Source: Azolla caroliniana
Taxonomy: Eukaryota; Plantae; Polypodiophyta
NCBI GenBank assembly: GCA_043228905.1
Contig: JBHGNT010000010.1
Span: forward strand, 19,654,001 to 19,718,000
Direction of reading: 5' to 3'
Length of the DNA stretch: 64,000 bases
Shown: one piece after another, positions 7,394 to 63,548 of the stretch
How positions within the stretch are numbered: position 1 is the stretch's first letter
Layout: each line of letters opens with the position of its first letter
Notes under the pieces: model-generated
The model's input: the letters and a program-made list of their open reading frames with translations, nothing else
Databases searched by the model: none
Told to the model about the DNA's origin: nothing
Made by a program: the position numbers and the translations under genes

Positions 7394-8383
7394 ATGTATA
7401 CTAAGAAATCAATCAATTGTGATGGTACTAGTATAATAAGATCATCTAATGTTCTTAGAGCACTCAATTCAATTCTGCCTATTATCTTCATATCCGTGGT
7501 GTTGTCCGGGCCGCATCAAATGAGGCATGTGATCGCTGACGATCTAAGCACTGATGCGTCCGCCCTGCTGGCATTCAAGAAGAATCTCTTGAATCTCGTG
7601 TTCGATGAGAGATTCAATTCATGGAACGAATCGGGGCCCATTGTCACAAACGCGAGCGCGGTGTGCGATTGGTTCGGAGTGCATTGCATAGACACGGATC
7701 GGGTCACGGAGCTACGGCTCCCGGGAGTGGGCCTCAACGGATCCATAGCGGCCTCCACACTCGGGAGATTGACGGGCTTGCAAACCCTAAGCCTCCGGCA
7801 CAACTTCCTCTCGGGGGCACTCCCCGCGGACCTTACGAATTGCCGGAGCCTCAAGAAACTGAACCTCAGCTCCAACTCCTTCTCGGGATTTCTCCTAGAT
7901 CCGTCCTCCTCCTTCGACTTGTCCGCAAATTGGTCCAGCCTCGAATCACTAGACCTATCTTTCAACCAATTCGCAGGATCCATCCCGAGCTCCCTGGCCC
8001 AAATCGCGTCCCTCGCCACTCTCCGCCTTCAGGGAAACAACTTCTCGGGCACCATCCCTAGCTTCTCCCAACCGCCCCTCGAAGATCTAAACCTCGCCAA
8101 CAATAACCTAGGCGGTAGCATTCCCTCTTCTTTGGCGGGCTTCTCGGCCAACGCATTTAGCGGGAACCCTAACCTCTGCGGATCCCCGCTATCGGTGCAA
8201 TGCCAAAATCAGTCCGTGTCTGTCTCGGCCCCGGCCCCTTCCTCTTCGGTTGCGGCCCCTTCCTCTCAGAATGCCGAGACCGGGAGAAGTCTTAGCCGGC
8301 AGTCGATTGCATGGATAGTCATAGCGATCGTAGTATTCTTGTTCATACTATGTGTCGTTATAGTGAGTTTACATCGTCGGTAA
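7394..8383 (+). CDS. LRR receptor-like protein (LRR-III/RLK902-RKL1-type ectodomain + TM, no kinase)
   Basis: 329-aa ORF: hydrophobic N-terminal segment, LRRNT (D..ALLAFK...SWN...CDWFGVHC), RVTELRLPGVGLNGSI, ~5 plant LRRs, C-cap FSGNPNLCGSPL...C, S/P/A-rich stalk, TM IAWIVIAIVVFLFILCVVIVSL, then HRR-stop. Confidence 0.9.
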   Translation: MYTKKSINCDGTSIIRSSNVLRALNSILPIIFISVVLSGPHQMRHVIADDLSTDASALLAFKKNLLNLVFDERFNSWNESGPIVTNASAVCDWFGVHCIDTDRVTELRLPGVGLNGSIAASTLGRLTGLQTLSLRHNFLSGALPADLTNCRSLKKLNLSSNSFSGFLLDPSSSFDLSANWSSLESLDLSFNQFAGSIPSSLAQIASLATLRLQGNNFSGTIPSFSQPPLEDLNLANNNLGGSIPSSLAGFSANAFSGNPNLCGSPLSVQCQNQSVSVSAPAPSSSVAAPSSQNAETGRSLSRQSIAWIVIAIVVFLFILCVVIVSLHRR

Positions 8384-10946
8384 TCCAATGCTCCGGCACT
8401 CCCGAATTAGGGCTGCCAGTTTCTTCGAAGATATATTAGCTCAAACTTGTGTGTGTGTGTGTGTGTGTGTGAGCACACTCACATTTTGAGAACATGTGTG
8501 ATTTCCCTTTGTAGTAACTTGTGTGTGCAGAATGGGAATCTTGTTTTAGATTCCCTCATTGATTTGGATTCTGTTTTAGATTCCCTCATTGATCTCTAAT
8601 CTTCATTCATTGTTTCTATTGCTCTTTGTTAGTAAAGAGAGAGACACTACTGTATATAGACCAAGTCCAATCCCATGTATTAAATGATCTTTAATCCAAG
8701 TTGTTTTTTTTTAAAGCCACTTACTTTGATGTATGTTCCACACACATTCACACACACAAAACTTCCTATTTGTCTTTGTTTGAGTTATATCAATGTTGGG
8801 CCTAAACCTCCCTAATCTTGTTCTTTACATGTTATCGAGGTGTTTTGTATCAAGGTCAGGCCTAAACTTTGTAATTTGGTTCTTTACATGTTATTTGGGT
8901 GTTTTCTACAAACTCAATAGTATCCAACTATTTAAACCATACCCTTGCACACCAATTCTAAAGCTAACTTTAATGGATTAAGGGCAATATAAGTTTGGGA
9001 GCCAATTATCCAAGGACTTTGAATAAACCCATAACGACCTATAACACATGGGAACATGTGGTGGTTTTGGGCTCTTGTGTGTTAAGTTGAGACCAATTCT
9101 TCGGATCCATTATTTATCTATCAAGGTATAACGTAATGTAATATTTCGTGCTATGGAACACTGGATTGGATGATATTATATGTTTGACTTGACATGTCCT
9201 TCACTCAGGGGTGGTTGGTGTGGCTAAGCACCCTTAATCCATTCTTTTCCATGATCTCTTATTATATTGCTCATCATTATTTCGATTTGTAATACCATAT
9301 TGTGTACGATCTAATGTTTCATGCACACACCAAAACATCTTGAGGTGCACTAGAACTACATCCAATAGAAGCAAATTGTAGTAGGATATATCAACATAGA
9401 TGTTTAAGTTATTCACCAAGAAACTCGGAGCATATAAGCTTGGATTTGGATAGCAATGACACTTGCCCTACATTCACTTGATCTGCCTACCTTGAGGGAG
9501 AGTGCAAACGTAGGAAAAACTAGCTTGTAGTACTAAGGATTGTACAACACAATTGAGAAGCAGTGTGTTGAGAAGTCAAGCTCAACCAAACCTTGTGTGT
9601 GCGCACACTCGTTAGAAAATATGTATGATACCTCTCTGTAATAAGTGTTGATCCTTTGTTTCCCTTTTTTTTTGGGTTCATGACCTTAGAAATAGTGTAT
9701 CCCTTAGTGTATTATGAACACGTCAACTCCTTATAGCAATTCTATATAGCTTGACTCCGATATCGTTGCTTAATTGCTAGAATAGTAGCATTAAGTTTAA
9801 AGATTAAATATTTAAAAACTTACATTGAGGCCATGAAAATGAACCAATGTATTATCATACCATTTTTTTGAATGTTATGTACAACGATCGTGTATACATG
9901 GATGTTTATGAAATTAAAGTAATTTTTATTACATAGAAAATCCAAAATGGGTCTAAGCCTCACTTTTAACAATTTAATAAGACAACACATTTTATGTAGG
10001 CTTTTAAAAGACCTTACCCACATTTGACCAATTCCAAAGTTTCCTATGTCATTGTTGAGATTTAAACCTAGAAATAATAATTGATCCTTGAATAGGTCAA
10101 GTTCGTATAGGTTGATTAGCTTTTGTATATATAGAAAAACATGAGAGAGAGATTATGTGTGTGTGTGTGTATGTTTGTGAGTTGGTGTGTGTGAGATATT
10201 TAAACATCCACTGTGGGACCAACAATCATTGCCAAACACTTTCTCCATATGCGTAGGTGGGTGATTTTTAAATGCAAAACTAACTAAAGAACTACACTAA
10301 AACATTTTCTCCATCCGTGTAGGTGGGGGTTTTTAAATGCCAAAATTTAATGAAATACTAAACCAAACACTAAAGTGAAAAACTAAAACCCTTTCCATCT
10401 CTTAATAGATTTTTTTATTATAAAAAAAGCTCTCTTTTGTAGATTTTATTTTCATCCTTGGAGGTCTAATATGACCTATAAGATCCAAAGTGATATTTTG
10501 ACATTTTGTATGTGTACAATTTATAGTGACCCTTGATGTCCATGAAGTTTCCTAACATGCCAACTTTGACCATACATTACGACCACAAGAGGAATGTCTG
10601 TAGGGATTGGAGTGGATTGACCATGTGTTAAAAGCAAACTCAAATGTGTTTGAAGGCAGAAATTTTTATGAATTGCCACACTCAAAACGTGAACTTAAGG
10701 CAAAATATTCATAACTAACAAGTTTCTTCTCTTGTGCTCCAACACATTGTCTCACATAAAAGAAAATTGAGCTACATTGTGTGGAAGCAATGGTGCATAT
10801 GGTAGACATCTATCAGTGAGTGTGGTTTTCCCATTTATGGTCTCCATGGAGTATGAGAAATGGGTGCTTGTCCGATGGGTCAATATATGACGAAGACAGA
10901 TTATGTGAAATGTGTTATTGTTTGATGGTTTCAGAAAAGTACCCGT

Positions 10947-11609
10947 TGTCGTGAAGGATTCCGGTCATAGGAAGAAAAAGGGGCCGGATGCGCGTGGACA
11001 GGGGTGTGCATGGATGCACACGAAACTATCGTTATGTACAAACATGTGTAAATATCATAGTATTAGTTTGAGTGTTGGTGAATACTAGGTAGGAATGATT
11101 TAATAGGTACTTTATGGCCACACGGATAGAGGAATAAAAGGTGATTGACTAGAGGAGATCAAGGAGAGAATCAGGGACAGAAAGCCTGTGTGCTCCTGAT
11201 TGCAAGCTCACTAGCGTTTGTGTGGGGAGCTCGAAGCTTTGTCACCGACTGAGCTTGGCTGTATTTTTTTTTTCTTATTAATTCCATTTCGTTTTCGTTG
11301 AATCCGATTGGACTCTCTGTGTTGGGTTCGCATCTCCATTCTGTTTCTATTTGCCCGCGTGTTTATATGAGTCTCGAGCCCATGTGCTCATCGCTTGCTA
11401 CCAGGCATCATGTCTTGAACAATACACGTGTCTAAGCCCATGCGCTCACTGTCCGGCATCTGGAGACTGATCTGTTTCGGATACGTGCCCGGACCGCGTC
11501 CCGGCGAAGATATCCGATCCGAACAATCTCTCTTCCCTTTCCGGCTCCTTGGTCTGAGACCCCGGTGGTCCCGCCCTGTTTCAACACATTCATGGGGAAA
11601 TCCACGACA
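10947..11609 (+). mobile_element. solo LTR, Gypsy TGTCGTG-type family
   Basis: TGTCGTG...CACGACA termini; 4-bp TSD CCGT (10943-10946, 11610-11613); clearly homologous to 54848-55669. Confidence 0.85.
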
Positions 11610-11627
11610 CCGTGTCTTGAAAGGAAA

Positions 11628-11985
11628 TTTGATTTAGTCATTTTCACAACTAAGCTTTGAGGGGCGAAGACCATATCCTTGGATGAATTGCCCTTATCTC
11701 ACTCTTACAAGACCTTAGATGGTTTATCTTGCATAAGATTCTCATTATTGAAGTAGTGGCATCTTTTGGTTTTTATATCAATATGTTCATGAAATAGACA
11801 TAATACTTTGATTTAGTCATTTTCACAACTAAGCTTTGAGGGGCGAAGACCATATCCTTGGGTGAATTGCCATTATCTCACTCTTACAAGACCTTAGATG
11901 GTTTATCTTGCATAAGATTCTCATTATTGAAGTAGTGGCATCTTTTGGTTTTTATATCAATATGTTCATGAAATAGACATAATAC
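11628..11985. repeat. tandem duplication, 2 x 179 bp
   Basis: TTTGATTTAGTCA...CATAATAC repeats at 11628 and 11807 with about two substitutions. Confidence 0.9.
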
Positions 11986-13499
11986 TTTCATGTTGAAAGA
12001 AAATAGAAATGAAAGATGCCTCCCTACATTGCAAGTGGCATGGACTTCCTATATATGAATTGTTAAATTCTTATTTATGAGCGAGAGACAAAGAGAGACG
12101 GTTGATTCAACACAATTTCTTCTTCCTAAATGTATTCTCGACATTATCTTGACCATATCCACTGGTTTTGCACATTCATGTGTATGTTACTTAGTCAAGG
12201 GAATTGTCGACAATAAGTCATTATTGAATACAAAGAAATGACAATGTAAGTAACATAGTTCTATGGCCTAGACACAAATAAATAAATAGCTTGTTTGTGG
12301 GAAGGATATAATGGTATTGTACTTAATATACATACAATTATTTACATGATATTCGTGTCAACGTATGCTTTTGTCAACGAAATATGGGTAAAAGCAGAAG
12401 GGGGCATCAAATTGGTTTTTGCAATAATAAGATATGTACACATTCCAACATGATTTTGAAAAATAAATTTTGTACTATATCATATATGTGGTTTGATTTT
12501 GTTAGATTAGAAGACAAAGTTTGCAACAAAATTGATATTGTTGCCGAAATTGAGAAGATATGTTAATAACTAATTAATGTATCTCAAGTATGATAGAAGG
12601 AGGCCAATTTTGACCTATGGGACTAAATAAACATATCATATTGTATGTGTTTCCTTCCTAAGAAAGGGCTTACTGTAAAGATTATCTATGCAAAAACAAT
12701 GCACACGCATATGTACCACTTAAATTACCTAACTTATGTTGAGAATTGAGTATGGCACTTAAATTATTACGCCCATCTAACGAGGCATCATACTTTTCGT
12801 GAATTACATTTTATGTTGAGCATGTGAAAAATAAGTGATATTGATCCTCAACTAGGTTTTCAATGCTTATCTTCAAACTATGGTGATGATGTCATTACGT
12901 TACCTCACCACCTAATTTGTATAAGCGAGTCATAAGAGCTATTACGACTCTTCGTTAACTAGGGCTCATGGGGGTAATAAGAGGTGGTTGGATATATTCT
13001 ACCATTTTTACCTTGTATACTAACATTGAGAGTTAGCATTTGCAATGTAATGTTCCAATTTTGACATTTAACATCTCACCACTGTATCCTTAGTGCCTAT
13101 AATAATATATCCTTGATTATCATATACTCCATAACATCACTTGAGAACTCAAATAAATCCTCTCCTCCCCCTCTCATGAGAGGGAAAGAGAGAAATGAAA
13201 TGGGGCTTTGTATTAATGTGGGCAAAGTGATCTATTAAATAAGAAGTTCCATCATCCCCATTTTGTTAATAGAAATCTGTTTGCTTATACTTTGTCTCTG
13301 TGTTCTGTGTCGAAGTCTCTATTTGTGTTGAGCGTCTTTGAGTCCATTTGTTTACTTCTCCACAGTCACAGTAGTTTGGTTCATGTAGGAAATATGTGCG
13401 GTCAGACTCCACTAAAAAGTACTCGTCGATACGACCATTCCCCGACCACAAGACCCTGATTTGGATACCAACGGGACGAGTATCTGGTACCGTGTTACC

Positions 13500-13930
13500 C
13501 TAGGCCGGTAATAGTCAATTTTACTTGGTCGATGATGTATACTCAGGGTACAACTAGTTCCAACTAGCCATCGAAACTAGGGACATTGCGACAATGCGGA
13601 CCCTGATCGGTTTACTTTGGATGTGTACTCTGCCACAAGGAGGAACAAACTCGGTCTCACACATGGTGAATGCGATAAACAAGGTTCTAAGGGATTGCAT
13701 CCCGGACATCACCATGTCGTTCCTGGACGACATTCCGATCAAGGGATATCTAGAAGATGAGAAGGACGAGACGCTAGACGGAGATGAATGCTGGAAGATC
13801 CTATAGAGGTTGGGAGGAGCACGCTTAACCTTGTCTGGAGAGAAGTTGGCATTCGGCCAGTCGGAGATCTTGGTGGCTGGACACCTATGCGGATCATACG
13901 GCCAGAAGCCATCCCCAACAAAGGTTGATA
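13500..13930 (+). pseudogene. isolated RT fragment of the A/E Gypsy lineage
   Basis: TLPQGGTNSVSHMVNAINKVLRDCIPDITMSFLDDIPIKG matches the RT of elements A and E; stops; no LTRs of its own. Confidence 0.85.
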
Positions 13931-14376
13931 GAGGTGGTTGTAGTGAGAGAATATAGAGAGAAGGTGACTACATAAGCACCTTCTTCTCTTCTTTGTAATT
14001 GTTGGTTGTTTTTACCTTGTTAATACAAATTTCTTGTTTTCTATATACTATGTTGTCGTTAACGGAGATGAATGCTGGAAGTTCATAGCCGACCACATTG
14101 CCAATTGCGAGAAGATCCTATAGAGGTTGGGAGGAGCACACTTAACCTTGTCTGGAGAGAAGTTGGCATTCGGCCAGTCGGAGATCTTGGTGGCCGGACA
14201 CCTATGCGGATCATACGGCCAGAAGCCATCCCCAACAAAGGTTGATAGAGGTGGTTGTAGTGAGAGAATATAGAGAGAAGGTGACTACATAAGCACCTTC
14301 TTCTCTTCTTTGTAATTGTTGGTTGTTTTTACCTTGTTAATACAAATTTCTTGTTTTCTATATACTACGTTGTCGT
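13778..14376. repeat. tandem duplication (~280/315 bp) spanning RT fragment, flank and LTR junction
   Basis: Copies start ACGGAGATGAATGC at 13778 and 14062; first copy lacks ~33 bp bounded by GAAG; both end CTATATACTAYGTTGTCGT. Confidence 0.85.
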
Positions 14377-14966: not shown

Positions 14967-14984
14967 TGGTGAACCCGATGTGAA
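14967..14984 (+). promoter_or_regulatory. primer-binding site of element A, tRNA-Trp type
   Basis: TGGTGAACCCGATGTGAA, 3 nt after the 5' LTR; 17/18 match to the complement of the plant tRNA-Trp 3' end as recalled (TTCACGTCGGGTTCACCA). Confidence 0.8.
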
Positions 14985-21876: not shown

Positions 21877-21923
<47 letters not shown>

Positions 21924-27220: not shown

Positions 27221-27253
<33 letters not shown>

Positions 27254-27307: not shown

Positions 27308-27339
<32 letters not shown>

Positions 27340-35864: not shown

Positions 35865-35904
<40 letters not shown>

Positions 35905-42500: not shown

Positions 42501-43043
42501 GAGCGTCTCGTCAGTGAAGGTGTGCCCTATGCAGGCCGGATCTCGTAGACTAGGGTCTGATGCAACCCCTTTGATTCTCGACGCGCTGTCCTCCGGTAAG
42601 GGTGCCGCTACTGGCCTTACCTTCCGGTCCACAGTCTTGTACTTGGTGTTTACGTGGGCCGTCCGAACTGACTCAAGCCCTCGACCGAAGTCCGCGATGA
42701 CTTCGTACATCTCCTCGGAACACACCGGTATCGTCCGGTCGTCGTTAAGGCCTTCTTCGACTACCTTTCCCAGCATTCCCAAGGTGTCGTCGAATGAGAC
42801 CGCCTCCACGGCTCCGTTGATTTCCTCGTCCGGGCCGAGAACTCCGCACGCTCGAAGTCTCGCCTCCGTCTTTGTTTTCTCTCGGCCGGCGATGCCGACC
42901 ATCGCACACGCTCCGTTGTCGGAGAACAAAAATTCCCTACCTATGGTACAAGGTTTCTTCGGTTTTATCGTACAGGTGTGGGGTTTTCCCGGGGTGTCCG
43001 GACTGTCGCGGCCCCACGCCTTGGCAGCCCTCTCTAAAAATCC
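39546..43043 (-). CDS. pol: element E Pol (RT-RNase H-integrase) in the -1 frame; one in-frame TAG at 40704-40706
   Basis: RT LPQGGTNS/MPFLDD, RH VDTSPTG...KRELWG...ADMLSR, INT WMVDL/VADRGE/NGKVERGH and GPY; ORFs 42929-40704 and 40604-39546 share a frame. Confidence 0.88.
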
Positions 43044-45160: not shown

Positions 45161-45182
45161 CTTCTGCTCTTCTGCCGCCTCT

Positions 45183-45200
45183 TTCACGTCGGGTTCACCA
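45183..45200 (-). promoter_or_regulatory. primer-binding site of element E, tRNA-Trp type
   Basis: Plus strand reads TTCACGTCGGGTTCACCA, the 3' 18 nt of plant cytosolic tRNA-Trp as recalled; 4 nt from the 5' LTR. Confidence 0.85.
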
Positions 45201-48200: not shown

Positions 48201-48585
48201 CGCCCATTACGGGGGAGTGTCGAATACAAGTGTATAATGGACGTATTCACACTATCCCTTTGGGCCATTTGTGTAATTAGCATAAATGGTAGTTGCCCTA
48301 AGTCGGTCACTATATATAGTGACCTTGTAACCTTTTTGTAAGGTTGGGTGTTGTATTATTGCTTTGTGGAATAAAGAGTTCTCTTGTGCCTCTCTCTCTC
48401 TCTCTCTCTCTCTCCATCTCTGTGCACGACCTCAGAAACGATCATACGCAGGTACTCAGAACAGAATCGAATGCTTCTTGATCTTCCGCATAGACGACTT
48501 TGATCTCCAACACCATCTTCTTAGTACTAATAGTACCTCCCTTCTCTAGTACTAATCCTCTCTCTGTTTAGTACTATTCCTGACA

Positions 48586-50293
48586 GGTTCATTGTTCTCC
48601 ATATGTGCAAAAACCCAACTGAATGAAGATAGATTTACTCCTGTTAGAGACATCCACACTAAACTGATACACCTCCAAACCATCCTTGCCATCAGGCATG
48701 AAATAAATCGATGCCTACTATGTTCCAATTCCATTGAACAAAAGAAACACAATCCTTTAGTAATGTTTCTTTTGTTTAATCAATCCCCTAATGGTAAAGC
48801 TCCAACCTATTACCGATTAGGAACACGGTCTACGGTCAATCCTTCGACCTAGACCTCAAAGTGATTGTGTTGCAACGAATGGTACCATCGTAGCGTAATA
48901 CTTAGTGGGATACCTCCCGTATCCTAGTAGTGTATAAGAGAGACGGCTACAACCGAACTCTTTAGACAGTGGACTAGCAACCACACTGTTACGCACGCCT
49001 ACGCTCTTACGACTGCGCTATGCCACCAAGAATCACAGACACACAGTAGATTAACCACAGATACGCACATGGATCAAAGAAGATAGAACTCTATTAAGAT
49101 ACGCCTTTTACATTCCAAAATTACATGCTACCTCTATCAGAGGATTTCTGCCCTTTATATACATAGGGTCTTTTTAGCTATTCACGCTTACCGCGTGAAC
49201 CGTTAACATGCGTTACAATTTTACTATATTATATTCCTGCGCTCCTGTCCGTCGGTTACTATTCCGGCGGAGAACACAACCATAACTCTCCAAATAAATA
49301 CCTTGGCTCATAGCATCAATCGAGAACACCAACTTGCCTTGATCACATGAAACCACCAAGTAATGGGCTTATGAAAACCCCATATCTTTATAACCCTTTC
49401 TTCCAACCACTTATGTTTGTCAATCAACTTGTGATAAGCAACATTCATTGAGATCATAGTCAATTTCTTATTTCCAACAAACCTTCAATCAAGCTCTTGA
49501 GATCGCCCATCTAAATTTGGAATTGGCTCATGCGAAGATAGTATTTGTTGCAACTTATCCCAAATAAAGTTATAACCTTTTGGAATACGAAATGTTGATC
49601 TTATTGTTCGAAAAGCCATTACTCTTGTTTGTGAAACCAACATAGCATCCTTAACTGTTACCAAACCCAATCTAGCCATCCGATTAAATTGAAGGTTAAG
49701 AATTTGTTTACCTTCCCACCTCAACAACCTTGATGTTGCCAAAACCTCTATTTGTAATGAATTGGCACATCCCATGTCTTGTGGGGGATGCCATTCCACA
49801 AAATCCAACATACTTTGCCAAGATGTCAACAAATGATTAACTATCATAGACCCTCTACATTTGACATCCCTGTCAGAATTAATTACATTCCACCAATTCG
49901 CTTCAACCTTCATGTTTCCAAGCTTTATTCCGTTCTTCTCTATAAAGTATGCCACCATTTCTGTCCAAGGTTGTACACCTTCAAACATGAATCGAATGAA
50001 AGTAAATCGATGAGCCACCATATGCTCATATAGATTCAATATTGATAACCAATCCACATTATCATAGGCTTTCTCGATATCCAATTGTAACAACACTAAT
50101 TCTTGTTTAGCCTCCTTTGCATAGTTAATTGCCATTTGAACATTTAAAATATGATGTAAAATGTCTCTTTTTGCTAAAAACCCATATTGATCATTATGAA
50201 TAATAGAAGGTAAAACCTTATGCAACCTATTGGCCATCACTTTTGCAAAAATCTTGTACATTCCCCCCATCAATGAAATAGGCCTCCATTGTC
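48586..50293 (-). pseudogene. decayed LINE ORF2 (partial RT with internal deletion, zf-RVT)
   Basis: WRPISL-MGGMYKIFAKVMANRL...QYGFL...LDIEKAYDNVDW; KVFIWRVMVGALP; CFFCSMELEHSRHRFISC..ARMVW. Confidence 0.85.
48808..49276. mobile_element. solo LTR (unassigned family) in the LINE
   Basis: 5-bp TSD CAACC (48803-48807, 49277-49281); ends TATTACC...GGAGAACA (TG probably mutated to TA); removal restores WRVMVGALPLG. Confidence 0.7.
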
Positions 50294-50788
50294 TCTCTCT
50301 CTAACTCTCTCTCTATCATACACACACACACACACACAAAATCATACCCAATTCTCTTTCACTACACAGAATCATACCCAATTCTTTACATGTTTTAATA
50401 TGGTGCATTCAAAGTTTGTAATGGCCCAATAGTTTTGAAACATCTTGAATCAAGAAATGTTTGTTAAAAGTTTTAAATAATTTAGCACCATAGCGCATTG
50501 AAAGTTTACGATGAGCCAATAGTTTTGTGACATTTTGAATCATGAAGTGTTTATTAAAACATTTTAGCTAATTTGGCACAAGCTCCTAGGTTGCAAAGCA
50601 CAATGTGTACAATGTACTATCATTTTAACAATCAAATTGATACATAAGATATTTGAGAGGATCTTAAAAAGATTACTTTAAATATCTAACATTATTGACT
50701 ATTTGAATCCAGGCATTCATTTGTTTTTTACACACTCTTTATTACTTGCTCTAACTCACTGAATATGCATGCTTCGATGAGTTTTACG

Positions 50789-51326
50789 TAGCAATGAGCA
50801 CGGTTTCGGCTCAAACCGAACCGAACCATTAAGTCATGGTTTAACGGTTTATTGGTTCCAAAACTTTTAATGGTTTGGTTTGGTTTGGATTTTTGATAAA
50901 CAGTTCGGTTTGGTTCTAAAACTCAAGTTTATAAGTTTGGTTTAAAGTTTTATAGGTTTTTGGTTAACATTTTTTTTACCTTAATAGTTTATTTATTTAA
51001 TGGTTTTTTATTGATTTAATTCATTTAACTTAAATGTTTATTTTATTTAATGGTTCAATTAAAGTTTCTTTTATTGATTTAATAAATTTAACTTAAATGC
51101 TTATTTAATTTAATGTATTTTTGTTTATTTAGATGTTTAATTAGTTTGACTTAAGTGGTTAGGTTTAAATTATTTATTAAACGGTTCAGTTTGGTTTCAA
51201 CTTTTCCCTAAACGGTTTGGTTTAAATACTGAGAGTTCATAAATGGTTTGGTTTGGTTTTGTTTTAAATAAACGGTTCGGTTCAGTTTCTTTGCCTTGAA
51301 ACAGAACCAAATCGTGCCCATTGCTA
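50789..51326. mobile_element. hAT-type MITE
   Basis: TIR TAGCAATGRGCACGRTTT; perfect 8-bp TSD GTTTTACG; subterminal AACCG/CGGTT repeats. Confidence 0.9.
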
Positions 51327-51897
51327 GTTTTACGCATATTATCTCTATGAACACATATACAATTGTAACGAGTCTTTTTATTAAAGTTTCTTATTGATCT
51401 TATGAATTCAACTAACGCCACATTGTCATTTAGCATGTGGTCTTCCACTACATGATACATGTGTAGAAAACATGTGTGGTTGCCATATGATTACGTCCTC
51501 ATATCATATAGCTCATAACATGATGAGCAGTGTGCATAATGGGGTGAAAGCATGTGAATGGAAACACTATTATAACTAATATGTAGCTAAAATGACCACA
51601 ACTAAGTAGTTTTTTATAGCTAATTTTTAGTGGGAAAATCTTAAAGATACATATCATTTATTATGGGGATGGAAATATTACCATTTATGGTCCACATTTA
51701 AGCTAGTCTTTATTTGAGATTACATTTTAATAAATTATCACTAAAATTGCCAAAATATGCAAATTACATGCAGCTTGTTGCATAGCTAATTAGTTATGTC
51801 AAGGACACAACTAATTGTTCCCATTCCCAGCTTTCACCCAACACTCTTTGTGGAGGGAGAATTCCACTTCGTAGAAAAGAACCACATTAGATGCATT

Positions 51898-52195
51898 CAA
51901 AGTAACTCCTAATATTCGCATACGCCCAATCTAGTAGACATATACGAATGTTTACAGTATAGGTTCGCATACAATAAGCGATATTAGTTTTCCTTCTTTT
52001 TTTATGGTCTTGACCTTTGTCTATAAAAATGTTGTTGATTTTTTATTTTTCATATTTTTTTAAAAACAAATAGAATAATAAATATAAATATAGACGAATG
52101 GATTTCAATCATAGTTGGAGCCAGTTCACGTATGAGTATGATAGGAATATTCACGTATGAGTATGGCATGAATGGGAAGTATGGCTAAAACAATG
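51898..52195. mobile_element. hAT-type MITE, same family as 4557-5020, inverted
   Basis: GAATGGGAAGTATGGCTA end is the reverse complement of the 4557 start region; flanks GATGCATT/GATGTATT (7/8). Confidence 0.75.
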
Positions 52196-52377
52196 GATGT
52201 ATTAATTAATGGTCAATATACTCTTTGAGACAATAAATGTACTTCACCTATGATAGAGATCTTCATGTTGATCAAGATTAGGTTATGGTGACGCGATTGA
52301 GAATATGCAAGAGAAGTTGATGTAGACCAAGTATCTCCCATGAAATGTCATCCAACGATGAAGAGTCAAAAGAGAAT

Positions 52378-53000
52378 CTATTGGAGAACCAATGGAAGAT
52401 TATTTATGTCATTGATTCGAGAGACTATCTCAATCATTGTGGGGCGAGCATCACAATGAACCACACAAGACAATGCGATTTTGAGGAGTTGTGTCATCTC
52501 TAGTTTGATATGGTTGAAGTTTTCCTCAGATCTCAAGGTCTTCGAATCAAAAACCTCAGCCACCCATCGTTCTTCATCGATGGACTCAACCCATTGTGGG
52601 AGGAGTGTGTGACCACGACTAATCGTAGCATCGACCTTATCACTAGGGGGGGTGATAGTTGTTGTAACTTTGGAGGATTTTCCGGTGATAAGCTCTAGTA
52701 GGAGAATGCCAAAGCTATAGACATCAGTGGAGGGATTGGCGGCCTCAGGATGGAAACCCATCGAAAGTAGCTCAGGTGCGAGATATGTTGTCATGCTGGA
52801 TTTAGCGTTGGGATAAAAGAGCGCGATTTGTGCCAACCCGTAGTCAGCGAGGTGTGGCTCCCATTGTTTGTCCATCAACACATTCGATGACTTCAAGTTG
52901 CCATGGACAATGTTGTGCTCGTGTAGGTATAACAATGCCTCTGCCATAGCCAATGCCACTCTTAGCCTCTTCTCCCATTCCATGGAACCATCCCCTGATC
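52378..53000 (-). CDS. LRR-III-type receptor kinase, exon 2 (kinase C-terminal half)
   Basis: Acceptor TTTCAG|G at 53001/53000; MEWEKRLRVAL, VHGNLKSSNVL, ADYGLA, YLAPE, DVYSFGILLLELITGK, WVAEVFD, RPTM. Confidence 0.9.
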
Positions 53001-53346
53001 CTGAAAGACCAATATTAATATATAACACTGCTAATATATCATTCTAATTTCTATATATAATGCAATATTTTAATTCCCTTTTCTCATTTCTCTATGTATA
53101 TTTTAAGAATACATGACGTCCCTAGTGAAATATGTTACAAATGAAAACAATAAGCTAGGAAATGTTCCACGGTGCTGAGTGAATGTGTACTTACACATGA
53201 AAATATCAAATTGCTCTTAACATTTCCCACCCTTAGGAACGCACACTCTTGCTCTCACTCTTCAACACCATATGCACCCATATATTAATCTTGCAAGACA
53301 CCAATCACAATTGAGCAAATAATGATAGGTGAAGGAAAAATCTAAT

Positions 53347-56300
53347 TGAAAACATTTATGTGCGGAAGCTTAACAGAATACAACTGGCTCAACCGAACAA
53401 CAACAGAGAAAATACAGAGAACCAATGGAGAACTCGGAAGAGACAAAGACAACGACAAAGAGCAGAAGACTAAAAAACTCAAATTCAATTTAATACTTCT
53501 CTGTACAAACAAATGTGTTGAGAGAGCACTTTTATACAAGTCCTTAAAGGACACGCTCGAAGTACTAACAAGTACTTCAATGCTCATAACTAAGCTAATG
53601 ACTCTAACTCCTACAAATATAACTACCTACTAAGTTAGGAGTGTAGGCCTCAAACGGCCTACCGGCTTCCCGTAGATCAAGCTCTCCAATCCAGTCCTCC
53701 AATCCGGTCTGGGCCTAGCCGATTGGTCTTCATCTGATCCAGCTCTCGGCTTATGTAGCCAATGGAGCCCATCTTGAGCTTACTTCTCAACACTCCCCCT
53801 CAATCTCAACTTGAGGTTCCTTTTGCTCTACCGGTTCCTTGCCTCGGCTCCTCTTGCCAGCTTGTCTCCTTGCACGCGCTCCTCGACAACACATCCAATC
53901 CCACGCTCTTCGACCTCCTCGGTCGGCTTGTCTACTCTTCAGGTTTTCCTTAGCTCGCTCATTGTCTTGGCAGTGGCCCAACTTGACCCATCTATTCCTT
54001 CATTTCGGTGTCGGCTTTGGTTGCTCTCTCATTTTCCTGGTCTTCATATGATTTGGCTCTCTCGAATCAAATTCCTTGACCGAATCGGTTGTCTCCGATT
54101 CGTTCCCGCTCTTGTCCAAATTGGTTGTCTCCAATTCGTCATCCTTCTTCAGGCCCTTGACCACATTGGACCATGTCTTGGTCCTACCCTTTTTCTTTCA
54201 ATCGGCTCTGTCCTTCTTGACTCTGCCGCCTTTCCCACTTCCTCCGGCTCTACCGGATATTTCAACTTCCTCAATCGATTCGGCTTCTTCTTGGGCTATC
54301 CTCTTGCCATCGATCAGTTCTCTCGGTTCTTTCTTCGGCTCATCATCTGCTCAGTGTGGCAAGTCGAGGTATTGGATGCCAAGCATCTCCGAGAAGTGTT
54401 GTAACTTGTCCGTCCCAAGGGCCTTGGTGAAAATGTCGGCAACCTACCGATCGATTCGAACATACCAGAGTTCGACTTCACCACTCAGGACTCGCTCGTG
54501 CACAAAGTGATAATGCACTTCTATATGCTTAGTATGAGCATGGAATACCGGGTTCTTGGCCAACTGCATGCTACTGATATTGTCGTAATAGATCAGAATC
54601 AGAGTGGGAACTTTGACCCGTAAGTCGTACAACAACCGTCGGAGCCATATAGCCTCGCAAGTTGCGACGATGGCGCCTCTATACTCAGCTTCGGTGCTAG
54701 ACAAGGCCATTGTCAACTGCTTCTTGCTGCTCCACGTTACAACCGCGCTCCCAAGAGAGAACATGAAACCTGATGCCAAGCGTCGATCTGTAGCGTCTCC
54801 AGCCCAGTCGGCATCAATATAGCTGACTAGCTGTTCGGCTATGCCGTTGTCGTGAAGGATTCCGGCCATAGACAGAAACAAAGTCGGATACGCGTGAACG
54901 GGCATGTGCATGGATGCACACAAAAATTAAGCCTTTATGTACAAACATATGTAAATAGAATAGATTCACTAGAAAGTACGAGGGAGTAGGATTTATGGGT
55001 ACTTTAAAGACCCACATAGATAGAGAGGATACGGGGAATCTCTAACAGTAATCACGATGTAACGGTCTCCCCTTGTCCTATAAAAGGGGAGGTTTGAGAT
55101 TGTTTCGAGGACAGAAGTTTTTGGGGGGACGAGGTGTTGTCGGACCAAGCTCTGCATGCTTCCTTCCTATTCTCCGTTTTCCAAATTTCCTTGTCGTTGT
55201 GCTGCGAGGCCTCCGTTTCACACTAGTAGCTTGTGTGCTCCCAATCAGAGGCTCGCTAGTGTCTATGTGTTTTTTATATTGAGCTCGAAGCTCTTTTTCC
55301 AGCCACGACCAGCTGTAATCTTTTCATGTTTCCTCTGTTAATTGATTAGTTCGTTGAGTCTCTCTATGTGCTTTGGGTTTCCCGTGTTCTTGCCTTTGAT
55401 CTATTTCTGTCACGTTGTATATCTGAGTGAGTTAGAGCTCATCACTGCCAACCAAAATCTAGTTTGGGGCCATACGGGTCCCCGAGTCCGTGTGCTCATC
55501 ACTGTCTGGCATTCGGGAACCGATCCGGACCAAACACGTGACCGCTAACCGATCTGACGAAGATATCAGAACCCAGATCCGGACAACCTTCCTACCCTCA
55601 CTGGCTCCTTGGTCCAAGACCCCCGTGGTCCCACCCTGTTTCAACATATCCACGCGGAATTCCGTGATACCGTGTCGGTACAGTAGTCCTTGATTCTTCG
55701 TGCCGCTCACATATCGCAATATTCGATGTGCGCACTAAAGATGCTCGACAGTCAGTCTCTACATGAGCTGACTTACCATGCTAACCGGATAGCTAAGATT
55801 GGGTCGGGTGAAAGTTAAATATATTAGGCTTCCGACAATTTGTCGGAACCGTTTCTCATCGCAAGTTGCTCCCCGGTCAGAACAAATCTTCAGGGTTCTG
55901 TCGAGAGGAGTAGAGATAGATCGACAATCCGTCATGCCAAGTTTGTACAGCATATTGAAGACATAATGTCATTGAGTGAGCAATATGTCATCGGGGGTGT
56001 GGATCACTTCAATCCTGAGGAAGTAATGAAGGTCCCCTAAATCCTTCATTACAAATGCTTCTGACAATTGAGACCTGACTTGGCTGATTTCAACAAGGTC
56101 GGGGCCAATGATGACTAGGTCATCCACGGATAACGATATACACACCGGACCCTTCGAACATTTCCGGATGAACAGGGACGAGTCGGACTTCGAGACTACA
56201 AACCCCACCTTACACAACCAGTGCGTGATTTTCCAGTTCCAAGCACGAGGGGCTTGCTTCAGGCCATAAAGTGACTTCTGTAGTCGGCATATTGTCAATT

Positions 56301-59300
56301 TGTTCATCTTCGACTGAAAACCAAGGGGTTGGACCATAAATACCTATTCTCCAAGGTCGCCTTGAAGAAACTCGTTTTTTATGTCCATCTTATGAAGATG
56401 CCACCACTTTGCCACTACGACCGCCAGCACCACACAGACTGTTGTCATCTTTGCTACTTGTAGTCGATGTCATGGGTCTATGTGTATCCTTTCGCCACCA
56501 ATTGGGCCTTGTACTGGTTGACTGAACCGTCGGCGTTGTACTTTATTTGGTACACCCATTTGCATCCGATTGGTTTGTATTGTCGGGGAGGGTCAACCAA
56601 GTCTCGTGCCTCCTTGGAATCAAATGCCCGCATTTCTTCCTCCATGGCCGATCGCCATTTGGCATCCTGCGATGCCTCTGCATACCTCTCCGGCTCGTGG
56701 ACTTCTGTCACTTTCTTCATGTACACATAGTGATGCGTCATGTATTCGTTGTACCCCTATCGGATCACCAAGTTCTTGTGGCTAGTTGATCGGCATAACT
56801 TCTCATTAGCCAATTTCAGGGCCCTCTTGGCCGCAATTGACCTCAACTCTTGATGTTAGTCTTCGCTCCGGTTGGTGTTGGATTCTCTCTGATTCCGTGC
56901 ACCTTTGTTTGTGTCATACTCTGGCATCTTCATCTTCCCCTTCTCTTTACGTGTATATCTTCCTTGCGTGGGGAGTGCACGACCGAGCCTTCACTATTTG
57001 CCGGCCCTTCATTCGACTAGTCATCCCAACTCAACTCCTCATTCAGCCCACTCAGCCGGAATGAAATCGAACTCTCTTCTAGAGTGCTGATATCTTCTTC
57101 TTCTTCTCAAATCATGTCGGCCTCAATAACCTCATCCTCAATAATTGGAATGGAGTCGGGGGTTGGAAGGGAATACCAGGACGCTGACTCGTCGAACACG
57201 ACATCTTGACTTGCTCGTACTTGCTTGATTTGAGGGTTGTAGCACTTATGCCCCTTTTGTTCATGTGAGTAGCCAACTATGATACATTTCTCCGACTTGG
57301 CATCCAGATTCTTCTACTTCTCATCTGGTACATGCACATATGCAATGCTACCGAATACCTTTAGGTGTTTTAAGTTCGGCTTGCGCCCGAAATACAGTTC
57401 ATGAACTGACACCTTCTCTCCAGTTGTCCAAATCTGATTCTGGATATATACAACAATCCAAACAACTTCAACCTAGTAGAATTTGGGCACACTCTTCTCT
57501 TCCAACATAGCTTGTGTTGCTTCCTTCCACAATTGACCGGTTCTTCCTTTCGGCTACGTAATTATGCTCTGGCGTATATCTACAACTGAATTCGCGCCGA
57601 ATTCCCATCTATTGCAAATAACTGTGACGAGCCGGAAAAGTATTCTTTTCCGCCATCCGACCGAAGACACTTGATTTTTTGTTATGTTTCTCTTTCGACA
57701 AGATTCTGCAAGTTCCGGAAACATGAGAAGACATCACTCTTCTTCTCTATCAGGTAAGATCCATGTGTGTCGGCTATAGTCGTCGATGAAGGAGACGAAG
57801 TATCGAATCCCGTCTAAGATCACATTCTGTGCTAGTCCCCACACATCCGAATGTATTAAGTCGAGCTTGTTGCGACTCCGATTACGCTCGTTGGGGGATG
57901 GAAGTCGGTGTTGCTTCCCTAGCTGGCAGACTTCACAAACTTGGGCCTTCCGGTCACTGAACTTTGGCAAACTAAACACGACTTGTTTCGTTTGCATCTC
58001 CTAAAGTCGATCCGCTTATGCCACAAGTCGATATCTTATTCAACTTTTTTCCTTTGGCAAACATTGTGGTGCCGACATCGTTTGTGTCGAGGATAAACAT
58101 CCTCCCTTCCCGGCACCCTTGCGCGATGATTTGGCCTTCTTCTTTGATGAAGCATCCGAGGTCTGTGAACCGGACCTGCATCCCTTGGTCAACAATTTGT
58201 TTGACCGACACCAAGTTCTTGGTGATTGTCGTCGGAACATGCTGGACGTGCATTAGTCTCCCCTTTTGTCCGACATGGCTCAAGGGGACATCACTAACAT
58301 CCTCGATTGGATGTGAGGTTTCGTCACTGGTTCGACAACCCCCGGTTATTCCGGTTTCTCCAAATATGAGAACTACTCTTCGTGGCTCGTCATGTGGTTT
58401 GACGCTCTCGAATCGACATACCACACCTCGTTCAGTTTCGAGGTGCTCAGCTTCATCGAGTTGGCCCTGTGCTTCATCACAAAGGTTGGGCCCTTTCCGG
58501 CTTGCTTTGAGCCTTCCGCATAGTGCAATCTTTGCCGATTTCCTTGTTCAGCTCTACTCGATCCGGATTTATCCATATCAGCCTTGAACTCTTCCAACAC
58601 TCGCTTTCTTTGTGGCCTTTCTTGACAGAATACTGGCATTCCGTCTCGGCCTTCGCTTGCTGGTTTCCGGTGCCTGCCCTGACTCCCCTTGCTTGTGGAA
58701 GGTCCGGAAATGTTGTCGGCATGCCTATTATGCCTCTAATTCTGCTCTTGTCGGCCGCCACTATTGTGTGCCAATCCACCTCGTCCTCCATGACCGTGGG
58801 GTCAATCCGCCTCCGTGTACAACACTCAGTTGTTTGATTGTGTGCTCCTTGACACACCCGCATGGTTCTCTTCGACCATAAGCATTGATTGCAGTTTAAA
58901 AAAATGACAATGGTTCCTCCCTTGTGCAAATAGTTGTTCGGATCGGCCCATACCTTTGAGCTAGACCACCGAGACAATTTTGCACCATTTCGTCCTCATC
59001 CACCGTCACCACCGTCACATTAATCGACCCCAAGCTGTCACATATTTCTTTGATTTTGGTGGTGTAGTCGGTCACCGTCATATCCCTCTGTCGGATATTG
59101 TTGAGCTCTTGATGGAGTTGCAACTTTCGACCCGTGGTACTCACAGAGAAAAACTTCATTAGATTTTCCCATGCCTCCTTCGGCGTCTTTGCATCTCGAA
59201 TGTAGCCTAGCATCTAGTCATGCACAAAGGATGCAAGGCAATACAAGACTCTACTTGCTGCTTGCTCCCACACTGGAAAATCCTTGTGTGTCGATTCTGG

Positions 59301-59624
59301 CGCTACTTCGTTTTCTTCATGGATGTAACTCCAGTAACCCTACCCAAGCAAGTATTGGTGCATCTTGTACTCCCAAGATGTGTAGTTGCTTTTGTCCAAG
59401 TTCTCTATCAGAAAAGCACCACCCATTCCACTATCCATTTTCTTCTTGTCTAAACTCGTCCGGGGATTAGGGTTTGTCTGAGTTTAATGCTTGTCGGTAG
59501 CAGAGGATTCTCAACCCTTGCGCTCGGATACCATGAAAAGATTTATGTGCGGAAGCGTAACAGAATACAACCGGCTCAACCGAGCAACAACAGAGAAAAT
59601 ACATAGAATCAATGGAGAACTCGG

Positions 59625-59674
<50 letters not shown>

Positions 59675-59920
59675 AGAAGACTAAAAAACTCAGATTCAAC
59701 CTCCCTGTACAAACAAATGTGCTGAGAGAGCACTTTTATACAAGTCCTTAAAGGACGGTCAGAAGTACTGACAAGTACTTCAATGCTCATAACTAAGCTA
59801 CTGACATTAACTCCTAAAAATATAACTGCCTACTAAACTAGGAGTGTAGGCCTCAAAGCTTACTGGCTCCCCGCGGATCCGGCTCTCCGATCCGGCCCAT
59901 GTTGAGCTTGCTTCTCGGCA
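53347..59920 (-). mobile_element. Copia LTR retrotransposon F, decayed, in the kinase intron
   Basis: LTRs 53347-53792 and 59534-59920; TSD CTAAT; PBS TGGTATCCGAGC 59522-59533; PPT AGGGGGAG; fragmented gag-PR-INT-RT-RH. Confidence 0.93.
54848..55669 (+). mobile_element. solo LTR, Gypsy TGTCGTG-type family, inserted in F
   Basis: Start TGTCGTGAAGGATTCCGG as at 10947; 3' end degenerate; TSD CCGT; removal restores YRHGIAEQLV in F. Confidence 0.85.
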
Positions 59921-60105
59921 CTAATCAATAGAGACCCAAGGTAACAATAGGAACATAAACGCAAGGAAAACTAACAACAAAGCCCACGATCATCGATGAA
60001 CACTCATTTGACATCTTAACCTTAATGTGTATGTACATGTCAATGAGATCATGTCATGCAAAATGCCATGGTCAGTCTCTAAAAGGAGAGGTTTGCGACT
60101 TTAAG

Positions 60106-60502
60106 TCAAAGTGGATGATATGACGTCAAGGCAAATAATATGAAATTAGAAATAAGAGACCTAAAGAATGTATGCATGGAAATATCTTCACAAGTTTATG
60201 CAAAACATGTATGTAATAAGAGGGAAGGTCATCATTGAAACCATGCAAGCAAAAAGCAACCCAACTTACGCTAGACAAGGCCAACTGGATAACAAAAGCT
60301 TCATATCAAAGTGGATGATATGACGTCAAGGCAAATAATAGGAAATTAGAAATAAAAGACCTAGAGAATGTATACATGGAAATATCTTCACAAGTTTATG
60401 CAAAACATGTATGTAATAAGAGGGAAGGTCATCATTGAAACCATGCAAGAAAAAAGCAACCCTACTTACGCTAGACAAGGCCAACTGGATAACAAAAGCT
60501 TC
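60106..60502. repeat. tandem duplication, 2 x 200 bp
   Basis: TCAAAGTGGATGATATGACG...AACAAAAGCTTC at 60106 and 60306 with a few substitutions. Confidence 0.9.
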
Positions 60503-62626
60503 GTTTAATAATGATAGTATTGGTATATATTAAACATATGATACATATGAACATAGAGCTACATTTGTAATACTAAAAGGTATGCCAAAAAATGGGGCCG
60601 GAACCTTTTAAACATTTCTTCCTTCTTTCAAGGATACACTTTTCCATGTTGAGGATCATTGTATACATTTGTGCATGATAAATGGGCAGGACCCAATTGC
60701 CTCGACTATGAATGTGCATACGTAGTATGTTGAGCACCTAGGAAATATTATCATTCTTCATCTACCAATGGGGTATATCCTAAAGTTGCTAATTTTTTCA
60801 TAAGTACAAAGGATTGTAGCCCCCAACAACAACAAGATGATACAAAGCTTATGTGGATTGATTGGAGATCAAATTAATCAAGATATTTATCATCAATCTA
60901 CATATTGTTGAGAATTATTACCAAATTACCTATTTTTTGGGTTGGGGAATTTAGGGTTGTTTATAATTAAACCAATACTTTGGTGGGGAATTTTATGCTA
61001 AGTCACTCTCTTAGTGAGCCCCCAATGGAGATTTCAAGTTTCTTTAGTTTTATATAAATTCATGGCATTGTTGGATCTAGTAGAACCAATATGTAGATCT
61101 ATCATCTATACCTCTTCTACAATAAACTAGTATGCACCTTTGTAACCATAAATTTGATGCTCTTCTATGTCTTAAGAAGCCTTTTTGACTCACTAGGAAC
61201 AAAATTTGTCTTTCTTGATCATCTTTTCATTCAATGGCTGTTTGTTTCAAGATCTACAAGTTGGTTGACTGATCATTGCAATTCTCTAATTAAAAAACAT
61301 TGCAACTTTATCTTAAACACTTTAGCTAGCTCATACAAGCATGAATATCTATCACATACCACGGTTGGCTATCAACTCTCATCCATTCTCCTTAAACAAA
61401 AAATGCACATATTGCCCATGCTAACTTTTTATTAATTTGTCTCACAAAAATTTTCACATGATTATTGTGTATGGTACTTATCCTAAAAGTTGTTCTTCAC
61501 TTTGTAAGCTCATTCTTCAACACACATATGTTTTGAGTATGTGTAAACATACACAAACCATATGTTGCTTACGTCTTCAATGTTCATATTCAAGTAAAGT
61601 CAAAGGTAAGTTAACTTATTTAATAAACTCATTTTATTTGCAAGGCTAGAGAGTAAGCAGTGGGTATAATCTCAATTACTCTAATAGACAAATGCTCGAA
61701 AGGGACATAATGAGTGCTTATAATATTCATAACTTTCATTTCTTGACCGATTCAAGATACTTTTCATTTGCTTTTGACTTTTAAAAAAGAAAGACATTTT
61801 TCCATACATACGCAGCCATGTGCAACTACAAGACACTACTATTAGAAGTTTTATTTAAAGAGAATGGCTATGATATGATGTAAGTCACGAAGTAGTCTAC
61901 ATCAATGGGAAGAACAAATGACTTAGTTTAAATGCAAAGTTTTCCTTACTAAGGTCCAATGTGGATTGAGCGAAGATAAGAGACACTTGCAAGCCCTACC
62001 TATTCTATACATCATAACAAGAGTGGACTCTTTCCTTACTAAGTTTTCCAAATTTCCATTCGTTCTCTAAAGTGGGTCACCATTAAGCAATTGGCACTAC
62101 ATGCCCAGATGATACACTAAGGGTAGGTGTTTGATTGGTTCTAAAACTCGGGTTTATCAGTTTAAGCGATTTGGTTTAAAGGTACTAGTATTTCATTCGA
62201 TGGCACCCATAAGAAAAACTTTACTATGTATATATTCGCGTTATTAATTATATATAAGTAATGCATTCTAAAGGATCTCTTGTTTGATTTGTGCAGGGTG
62301 TGAAACGAAAGAGAGAGATTGGAAAATGAATGACACTTAAGCATGCTACCTGTAAATACCAAGTACCTAGTCATTGAGGCAAGTGCAGAGAGGTCAACTC
62401 GGTGACTGCAAGAGCAATGCATGAGACCAACGGGACGGACATAGCTCATTGAATAAGGTTGTTCGACCAAGACTAGAAGGCAACATTTAATATTGGCATC
62501 TTGGGACATTAGGGAGAATATATACGTGTGTGTGGAAGTGGCATCCAATGTTGGATCTCAAGGCCTTGTGTTTTAGATGGTCAACTAGCTAGTAAAGAAG
62601 AAGGAGACATGTGAAGGAATTATTAC

Positions 62627-63548
62627 CATGGAGGAGAGTGGATAGGCTGCCATTGGGCATGTAGTCCATGACTAGGAGGGGTTGGTTATTCTTGCTTATG
62701 AAGTATGCGAAGAAGGGTGCCAAGTGCCGGTGCTCAAGCCCGCCGAGTGCCTCGATCTTCCTCCTTATAATCGACTCTTCTTCGCAATCATCATCATTGA
62801 TGCCAAGACTGTGGATAAGCCCCTTGAGCCGCTTAATGACGACCGTAAGCCCGCTCTCCAACACGGCCTTGTAGGACATGCCGAAGCTACCCTTCCCTAG
62901 AAGCACCGCGGATGCCCCCAAAACTTCCATTAGCTTGAATCCCGATCCGCCCCTCCTCATGAACACTAACTCTTTCGACAATGCCACTTCATTGACAATT
63001 CTATCATCATCCGCAGCCGATCCTGATCCGCCCACGATGATGTTCACATTGGGCACCTCCCTCTTGCCTAATGTCAACTGCTCCTTCCTCATGGTACTTG
63101 GTGATCCACCCCACCATTTATTCATATATGGCATCCAGCGGGCTCGCAATATTATGATGGCCACGATGCCACATACCAGGATGAAGCCTGCGATAGTTAT
63201 TCCTGCAATCACACCCACACTAAGGGTTTTCGATCGATTCTCGTCATTCTCGGGAGATGGAGATGGTGATGGTGATGGTGATGGTGATGGTGATGGTGAT
63301 GGTGATGGTGATGGTGATGGTGATGGTGATGGTGATGGTGATATATCCTGGGCATTCACTACTATAGATAGCAAGATTCGATCCGAGGCGATCCCTAAGT
63401 CATGGCATATTAATGTCAATGCGAAAAAGATTTGTAGAACTAGAATTATGTGTAGATTAGCATTAAGAAGAGATCGGATCGGCATAATAGTGTAAGAATT
63501 AGTGTCGTAACTGGATCTTAATTTGTTTGAATAGATTAGCCTTAACAT
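62627..63548 (-). CDS. LRR-III-type receptor kinase, exon 1 (signal-like segment, (SP)15, TM, kinase N-lobe)
   Basis: ATG at 63548 or 63485; hydrophobic leader ending VVNA-QD; (SP)15; TM VGVIAGITIAGFILVCGIVAIIIL; ELVF...FKLMEVLGASAVLLGKGSFGMSYKAVLE, VVIKRLK, DYMPNGSLSTLLHG followed by a GT donor at the usual phase-1 position. Confidence 0.88.
63252..63341 (-). repeat. coding hexanucleotide microsatellite (TCACCA)13-TCTCCA-TCTCCC = (Ser-Pro)15
   Basis: 90-bp GGTGAT array on + strand, in frame within exon 1. Confidence 0.95.

Follow-up and report, generated by a model that had tools for sequence, protein, structure and literature searches.

The question raised by this locus is whether two convergent genes of Azolla caroliniana are the halves of one receptor kinase that came apart into a sensor and a kinase, or two truncated genes derived separately from the same receptor kinase family. 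Both lie in a stretch of 64,000 nucleotides (contig JBHGNT010000010.1 of assembly GCA_043228905.1, positions 19,654,001 to 19,718,000 of the forward strand), which we refer to as the window and whose first letter is position 1 in the numbering used here. A first-pass annotation of the window had read the pair as inverted duplicates of one leucine-rich repeat (LRR) receptor kinase of the LRR-III subfamily that underwent reciprocal domain loss and now form a genetically linked two-part receptor. With moderate confidence, we instead read them as two separate structural variants of LRR-III receptor kinases, one LRR-only and one reduced to its receptor-like kinase part (RLK-only), lying tail to tail in a transposon-rich region. 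By their encoded domains and motifs, and by their best database matches, which are LRR-III proteins, both genes are derivatives of the LRR-III family with complementary architectures.

The gene on the plus strand encodes an LRR-III ectodomain on a membrane anchor and consists of the following features:
7394–8383 (stop codon included), plus strand: LRR-only gene, a single exon and single open reading frame (ORF) of 329 aa, from the ORF call, Pfam and homology
7451–7513, plus strand: N-terminal hydrophobic segment resembling a signal peptide, residues 20–40, from hydropathy
7547–7687, plus strand: LRRNT_2 domain, residues 52–98, with Cys91 and Cys98, from Pfam and cysteine positions
7700–8203, plus strand: about six LRRs and a C-terminal cap (Cys262 and Cys270), collinear with LRR-III ectodomains, from Pfam and alignments
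8204–8290, plus strand: stalk rich in Ser, Pro and Ala, from the translation
8291–8380, plus strand: transmembrane (TM) segment followed by a three-residue basic tail (HRR), from hydropathy (hydrophobic residues 300–329)

Besides LRRNT_2, the product matches LRR_1, LRR_8 and LRR_4 of Pfam, and it carries seven N-glycosylation sequons. Its ectodomain shows the LRR-III plan of an LRRNT cysteine pair, repeats, cysteine cap, stalk and single TM segment, and it aligns in one collinear stretch with the solved LRR-III ectodomains of PRK6 (5y9w, query residues 58–297) and PRK3 (5wls). An LRR-III protein of Taxus from the RKL1 clade (P0002) is 47% identical to it and collinear repeat for repeat. Pfam, hydropathy and this collinearity thus bear out the architecture proposed at first pass except in the number of repeats, which is about six when counted by eye and not about five. 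The abrupt end of the gene is also as first described: the TAA stop (8381–8383) sits three residues past the TM segment, overlapped by a GT at 8380–8381, and is followed by a (GT)n tract and AT-rich sequence. Neither a juxtamembrane region nor a kinase for this gene was found on the plus strand of the window, by motif scan or by tblastn with the gene models and 14 reference RLKs. Since the stop follows so closely on the TM segment and the plus strand holds no kinase remnant, the LRR gene is to be regarded as a kinase-less derivative and not as a receptor kinase.

To place the LRR gene against its family, conserved positions were scored and trees were built with 73 LRR-III references. The gene keeps 93% of the family-conserved positions (references: median 96%, minimum 80%), and its identity to full-length members of four named reference clades is 46%, compared with 48% between those clades. 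A metagenome scan with the gene returned one near homologue, L002 (ENA ERZ1034379, 1089 bp at 1.1x coverage), with 76% protein identity over residues 1–248, and 10 other matches that are 29–38% identical. Over 202 codons shared with L002, the nonsynonymous rate (dN) is 0.15 and the synonymous rate (dS) 0.59, for a dN/dS of 0.25 (bootstrap 95% confidence interval 0.16–0.38); neutral evolution, a concern raised at first pass, is therefore not supported for this gene. Identity at the three codon positions is 83/90/71%, and six of the seven coding indels are multiples of three, the seventh being a 2-bp frameshift in L002 that may be a read error at such coverage. GC content at third codon positions (GC3) is 63–70%, against a flank GC of 33–36%. 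In a substitution-only simulation of neutral survival, the ORF stayed intact with a probability of 0.07–0.27. On its dN/dS and in-frame indels, the LRR half is under purifying selection, and it behaves as a normal constrained LRR-III ectodomain.

Two further observations concern the same alignment. Upstream of the LRR start, 380–450 bp can be aligned between the window (7016–7393) and L002 (1–450) with 80.6% identity in aligned columns and many indels, and since this identity is about equal to that of the coding region, it suggests a conserved promoter or 5′ untranslated region. An antisense ORF overlaps the LRR coding region both in the window (7516–8019, minus strand, 167 aa) and in L002 (387–878, minus strand, 163 aa); most likely, this frame is no gene and only reflects how GC-rich and repeat-constrained the sense strand is. 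A representative search with the LRR ORF was uninformative, since ranking by summed repeats filled the top 150 places with giant multi-LRR fusion proteins. Exact look-ups of the products of both window genes and of the L002 ORF gave no record in a collection of 5.8 billion proteins or in the contig index.

The gene on the minus strand is complementary in content, with a kinase and no repeats, and is divided into two exons:
62627–63548, minus strand: exon 1, with leader, (SP)n stalk, TM segment, ELVF juxtamembrane motif and N-lobe to ..STLLHG (alternative start Met22 at 63485)
63390–63470, minus strand: hydrophobic leader resembling a signal peptide, with a GC3 of 39%, near that of the non-coding flanks, from hydropathy and composition
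63256–63342, minus strand: hexanucleotide microsatellite of 14.5 copies with 98% matches, encoding (Ser-Pro)n, from TRF
63132–63227, minus strand: TM segment, from hydropathy
53001–62626, minus strand: intron of 9.6 kb, GT..AG, phase 1, from splice-site reading
53347–59893, minus strand: decayed Copia element within the intron, with gag (59213–58899), Pol_BBD (58424–57975) and RVT_2 (56337–55972), its ends resembling long terminal repeats (LTRs) and 81% identical
52378–53000, minus strand: exon 2, the C-lobe with HGNLKSSN, ADYGL, YLAPE, DVYSFG and LPQWV, ending in a stop codon (52378–52380)

The open frame of exon 1 begins at 63647, with Met codons at 63548 and 63485, and its donor GT at 62626–62625 (gtaata) directly follows ..STLLHG; the acceptor of exon 2 reads ..tctttcag. 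Exon 1 holds the kinase motifs ELVF, GKGSFG..YKA and VVIKRLK, and the C-lobe additionally holds ..ARPTM... The gene thus shows the marks of an atypical kinase of the LRR-III type: the LVF motif, a GKGxxGxxYKA N-lobe, HGN(I/L)KSSN replacing HRD, and one intron, which follows ..LLHG. This intron is placed at the canonical LRR-III position because exon-1-type ORFs in the database, of which there are many single-ORF calls of 420–480 aa among the LRR-III entries, end at the same ..LLHG. In alignments, the (SP)n stretch matches the Ser- and Pro-rich stalk of canonical LRR-III proteins, and what is absent relative to these proteins is exactly the LRRNT, the LRRs and the cap. No LRR was found by Pfam or tblastn in exon 1 or in the 450 bp upstream of it, at which point the window ends (64000). 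Motif scan, Pfam and tblastn therefore agree with the first-pass account of this gene as a leader, TM segment, LVF motif and LRR-III kinase without LRRs. A relic of the LRRNT start within the leader, as an internal deletion would leave, was considered and rejected, the profile of signal peptide plus LRRNT scoring 2.6 bits on the hydrophobic core only. A word-index search with exon 1 gave just two distant matches, both annotated RLK-Pelle-LRR-III, and no close relative of 194–616 aa in the searched database; no homologue turned up for the kinase gene that was near enough to compute dN/dS. Inside the intron, a two-copy tandem duplication lies at 60106–60502 (unit 200 bp, copies 96–98% identical).

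Compared with the LRR half, this kinase has changed far more. It keeps 67% of the conserved N-lobe positions, below every reference, and while reference clades are 63% identical to one another in the N-lobe and 56% in the C-lobe, its identity to them is 47% and 41%. Its terminal branches in the trees are about two substitutions per site long, and the ratio of N-lobe to LRR distance is 1.1–1.5 for the window pair versus 0.46–0.73 in canonical genes. Relative to the LRR half, the kinase has thus evolved two- to threefold faster. At the same time its frame is unbroken over both exons, and the splice sites and the G-loop, VAIK Lys, HGN..N, DYG, APE and RP motifs are intact. GC3 is about 50%, against a flank GC of 32–37%, and is lower than in the LRR gene. 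Simulated over the divergence that separates the two intronic LTRs (0.109 per lineage), the probability that the kinase ORF would stay free of stop codons is 0.003, and it appears unlikely on this count that the ORF survived neutrally.

The two genes lie tail to tail, with 44 kb between their 3′ ends and 56 kb overall. Most of this interval is taken up by a single block:
13514–48589, no strand assigned: nested LTR retrotransposons (Copia and Gypsy, about 35 kb in all), with LTR pairs 89–99.75% identical

Here the first-pass annotation held up well, since both frames are intact, the 13.5–48.6 kb interval consists of nested Copia and Gypsy elements, and the 7–10 kb it had expected after subtraction of transposable elements was measured at about 8 kb (8384–13500 and 48600–52377). 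The first transposon homology downstream of the LRR gene appears about 2.5–5 kb past its stop, and none abuts the stop codon. No other LRR or kinase pieces were found on either strand of the window below E = 0.17 by tblastn with the two gene models, nor was any further piece found below E = 0.1 with the 14 reference RLKs.

The kinship of the two genes is where the earlier reading gives way. Self-blastn of the window detects nothing in common between the DNA of the two gene bodies or of the sequences directly flanking them, tblastn gives no cross-match between them, and by inspection of the translations the overlapping stalk and TM parts share only the family consensus (LS..IA.I.IA). The description of the pair as inverted duplicates therefore finds no support, and recent inverted duplicates were rejected on the same grounds. 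The assignment of the receptor to an RLK902/RKL1 type fared no better: by identity, neither half is nearer to any one of the RKL1/At3g02880, At2g26730 and At5g58300 clades. The tree of the LRR half singles out no subclade, and an approximately unbiased (AU) test allows joining it to the RKL1/At3g02880 clade (p 0.66). A quick tree nests the kinase N-lobe within that clade (SH-aLRT 97), but placement outside is just as acceptable to an AU test (p 0.80); the C-lobe tree, with its long branch, resolves no subclade. Two ways of deriving the pair from a single gene were also rejected. A simple inversion of one gene would fit the tail-to-tail order but cannot yield two leaders, two stalks and two TM helices. 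Fission of one gene should leave collinear, non-overlapping pieces, and what is found are genes on opposite strands, 44 kb apart, both with leader, stalk and TM segment. That each gene keeps its own leader, stalk and TM segment, together with the unequal rates, also argues against the proposal of one receptor split in two. For two LRR-III derivatives 56 kb apart, local duplication from a shared ancestor is the simplest reading, made plausible by proximity only.

The history that we consider most consistent with these data would run as follows. Local duplication of one LRR-III locus is the likely origin of the pair, given how close the two genes lie. One copy would have lost everything from the juxtamembrane region onward, leaving the full ectodomain, the TM segment and a three-residue tail. 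Since the ectodomain is kept by purifying selection, its product most likely binds a ligand or a partner at the cell surface, and it would have to act through another protein that bears a kinase, or as a decoy or competitor. The other copy would have lost its LRR domain, with a short leader joined to the stalk of the family and the stalk expanded by microsatellite slippage. This kinase, with the HGN-for-HRD loop that is usual in LRR-III, would have diverged fast while keeping its frame, splice sites and fold-defining residues, and its most likely role would be that of a scaffold or a co-receptor-type kinase whose partners have changed. The two proteins could possibly signal together.

Several points weigh against reading the genes as two functional variants from one locus. 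Both are known here from genomic sequence alone, and since the window extends 450 bp beyond the kinase start, upstream exons are possible. L002 is a low-coverage contig with a frameshift, the dN/dS obtained from it averages both lineages, and because it ends before the TM segment, whether the homologue is also truncated cannot be read from it. The AU tests reject neither subclade placement for either half. A local duplication is suggested by proximity only, and no similarity beyond the family level is found, although an ancient duplication would still be compatible with this. Finally, the fast evolution of the kinase could reflect early decay rather than new function.

The last point leads to the alternative that survives best, namely that one or both genes are fragments of recently disabled LRR-III paralogues whose frames have not yet been hit. 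In the kinase, a third of the N-lobe positions conserved across the family are lost and the branch is very long; its GC3 is below that of the LRR gene and its 9.6-kb intron is filled with transposable elements, while the LRR gene ends abruptly in AT-rich, repeat-bearing DNA with a (GT)n tract; the frameshift in L002 and the simulated survival of the LRR ORF would fit decay as well. The dN/dS and in-frame indels of the LRR gene speak against it, as do the low probability of neutral survival of the kinase, its intact splice sites and core motifs, and the sharp rise of GC3 over both coding regions relative to their flanks. We consider it unlikely that the genes are relics of this kind.

The proposal that inverted duplicates lost complementary domains, and that their products form an obligate linked two-part receptor today, joined for instance by their TM helices, draws on the complementary architectures with a TM segment in each gene, on the apparent constraint on both, and on AU tests that are compatible with both halves in the same clade. 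The closeness of the genes would count in its favor too, if the finding that this family is not usually tandemly expanded (PMC10739070) applies here. Against it, the overlapping stalk and TM parts and the flanking DNA show no specific similarity; the rates are strongly unequal, which tight co-dependence does not predict; and no pairing has to be invoked for truncated paralogues, as the LRR-only and the RLK-only class each account for about 10% of the family. Taken together, an obligate two-part receptor seems quite improbable. We give a similarly low, slightly smaller, chance to a linked pair from one LRR-III locus in which an LRR-TM sensor and a fast-evolving, (SP)n-stalked TM pseudokinase transducer would have subfunctionalized in the manner of CLV2 and CRN.

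It is very unlikely that the kinase gene is a full-length LRR-RLK with one or more LRR exons upstream of 64000 and an intronic ‘leader’. The short stretch of window available upstream of the proposed start, the non-coding-like composition of the leader and a CAG directly before the (SP)n repeat would allow it. In canonical LRR-III genes, however, the LRRNT through the N-lobe are encoded in one exon, as seen in dozens of single-ORF entries of 420–480 aa, so an intron at this place would be new; two more AGs lie within 15 nt upstream of the CAG, the pyrimidine tract is weak, and the leader has a hydrophobic core like that of a signal peptide right after its Met. As for the LRR gene being untruncated, with the GT that overlaps its stop spliced to distant exons, CG|GTAA at 8378–8383 is a usable donor, but the remaining 55 kb hold no kinase or juxtamembrane coding on the plus strand onto which it could splice, the case that the first-pass annotation had raised, and LRR-III genes have no intron at this point, making this the least credible of the accounts.

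Apart from the two genes, the window is rich in repeats. The youngest Gypsy-type element is a very young minus-strand retrotransposon (38675–46005, within 35694–48512) with 800-bp LTRs that are 99.75% identical and ORFs for reverse transcriptase/RNaseH (40704–42929) and for a gag-like product with DUF4100 (43034–45187). It sits within a Copia element, between the LTRs of which identity is 96.7%. Among matches to its reverse transcriptase ORF, the sole named species is Riccia sorocarpa (46–67% identity), and ENA contigs reach 78%. A second Gypsy element at 27.7–35.7 kb contains an array of 51-bp units, each with an internal palindrome (30488–30775). A 104-bp sequence occurs twice, in opposite orientations and with 88% identity between the copies, 2.7 kb 5′ of the LRR gene (4554–4657) and 180 bp past the kinase stop (52095–52198); it resembles a short mobile repeat, and no tie to a rearrangement was found. 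One repeat family is common, in direct orientation and at 71–80% identity, to 10943–11616, 2.5 kb 3′ of the LRR gene, and to 54844–55676 in the intronic Copia. Two-copy tandem duplications with 96–98% identity lie at 11628–11988 (unit 179 bp) and 13794–14376 (unit 317 bp), and at 3301–3795, upstream of the LRR gene, a fragment of a non-LTR retroelement encodes a zf-RVT domain in an ORF of 164 aa. An Rfam scan of the window gave no match.

As the evidence stands, LRR-only and RLK-only derivatives occur in this genome, where the ectodomain copy has been conservative and the kinase copy diverged quickly after truncation. The locus is useful for annotation and for studies of the structural evolution of RLKs, and will not surprise a specialist. 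If the two proteins do cooperate, they would offer a natural case of a receptor kinase dismantled into a genetically linked sensor and transducer, which would inform the origins of receptor-like proteins (RLPs) and co-receptors.

Known systems place the pair in context. CLV2/CRN, RLP/SOBIR1, Xa21D and SLG/SRK are functional analogies for it, none of which tests this locus. Xa21D of rice is reportedly an LRR-only receptor from a truncated member of the Xa21 family (Wang et al. 1998, cited in PMC7318236). It resembles the LRR gene in being a kinase-less derivative of an LRR-RLK paralogue, one that can keep a recognition function, but its truncation reportedly came about by insertion of a retrotransposon, whereas no transposable element abuts the stop codon of the window gene. 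Brassica SLG/SRK likewise combines an ectodomain-only paralogue with a tightly linked receptor kinase of the same family, but the RLK family is a different one, SRK has its full length, and SLG, instead of being anchored by a TM segment, is secreted. The CLAVATA2/CORYNE pair is similar in joining an LRR-TM protein with a short tail to a TM kinase that lacks a ligand-binding ectodomain and is maybe catalytically weak. The window pair, whose association is putative, differs from it: the CLV2 and CRN genes are not linked, and CLV2 does not count as a truncated LRR-RLK (PMC7318236). With the LRR-III kinases themselves (RKL1/At1g48480, At3g02880, At2g26730 and At5g58300; PRK3 and PRK6) the window genes share the ectodomain plan, the stalk-TM motif, LVF, GKG..YKA, HGN(I/L)KSSN and the intron after LLHG, but each gene has only part of that architecture, and the window kinase is 41–47% identical to the references where these are 56–63% identical among themselves.

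The closest parallel is the survey of nine plant genomes by Man, Gallagher & Bartlett 2020 (PMC7318236), in which 10.7% of LRR-RLK family genes are LRR-only, 9.9% RLK-only and 2.8% candidates for fission. Most of these truncated derivatives show normal expression levels, RLK-only genes abound in clade III_VIIa, and LRR-only derivatives persist longer because their promoter is retained (PMC7318236). The fission cases of that survey are adjacent, collinear and non-overlapping pieces, unlike the window genes, each of which keeps a leader, stalk and TM segment. The LRR-only and RLK-only classes, by comparison, are truncated paralogues nested in LRR-RLK clades, and the window genes fit both. A conservative LRR-only copy beside a fast RLK-only copy with a non-coding-like leader fits this picture as well. 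Unlike the general run of these classes, the window holds one of each within 56 kb, tail to tail.

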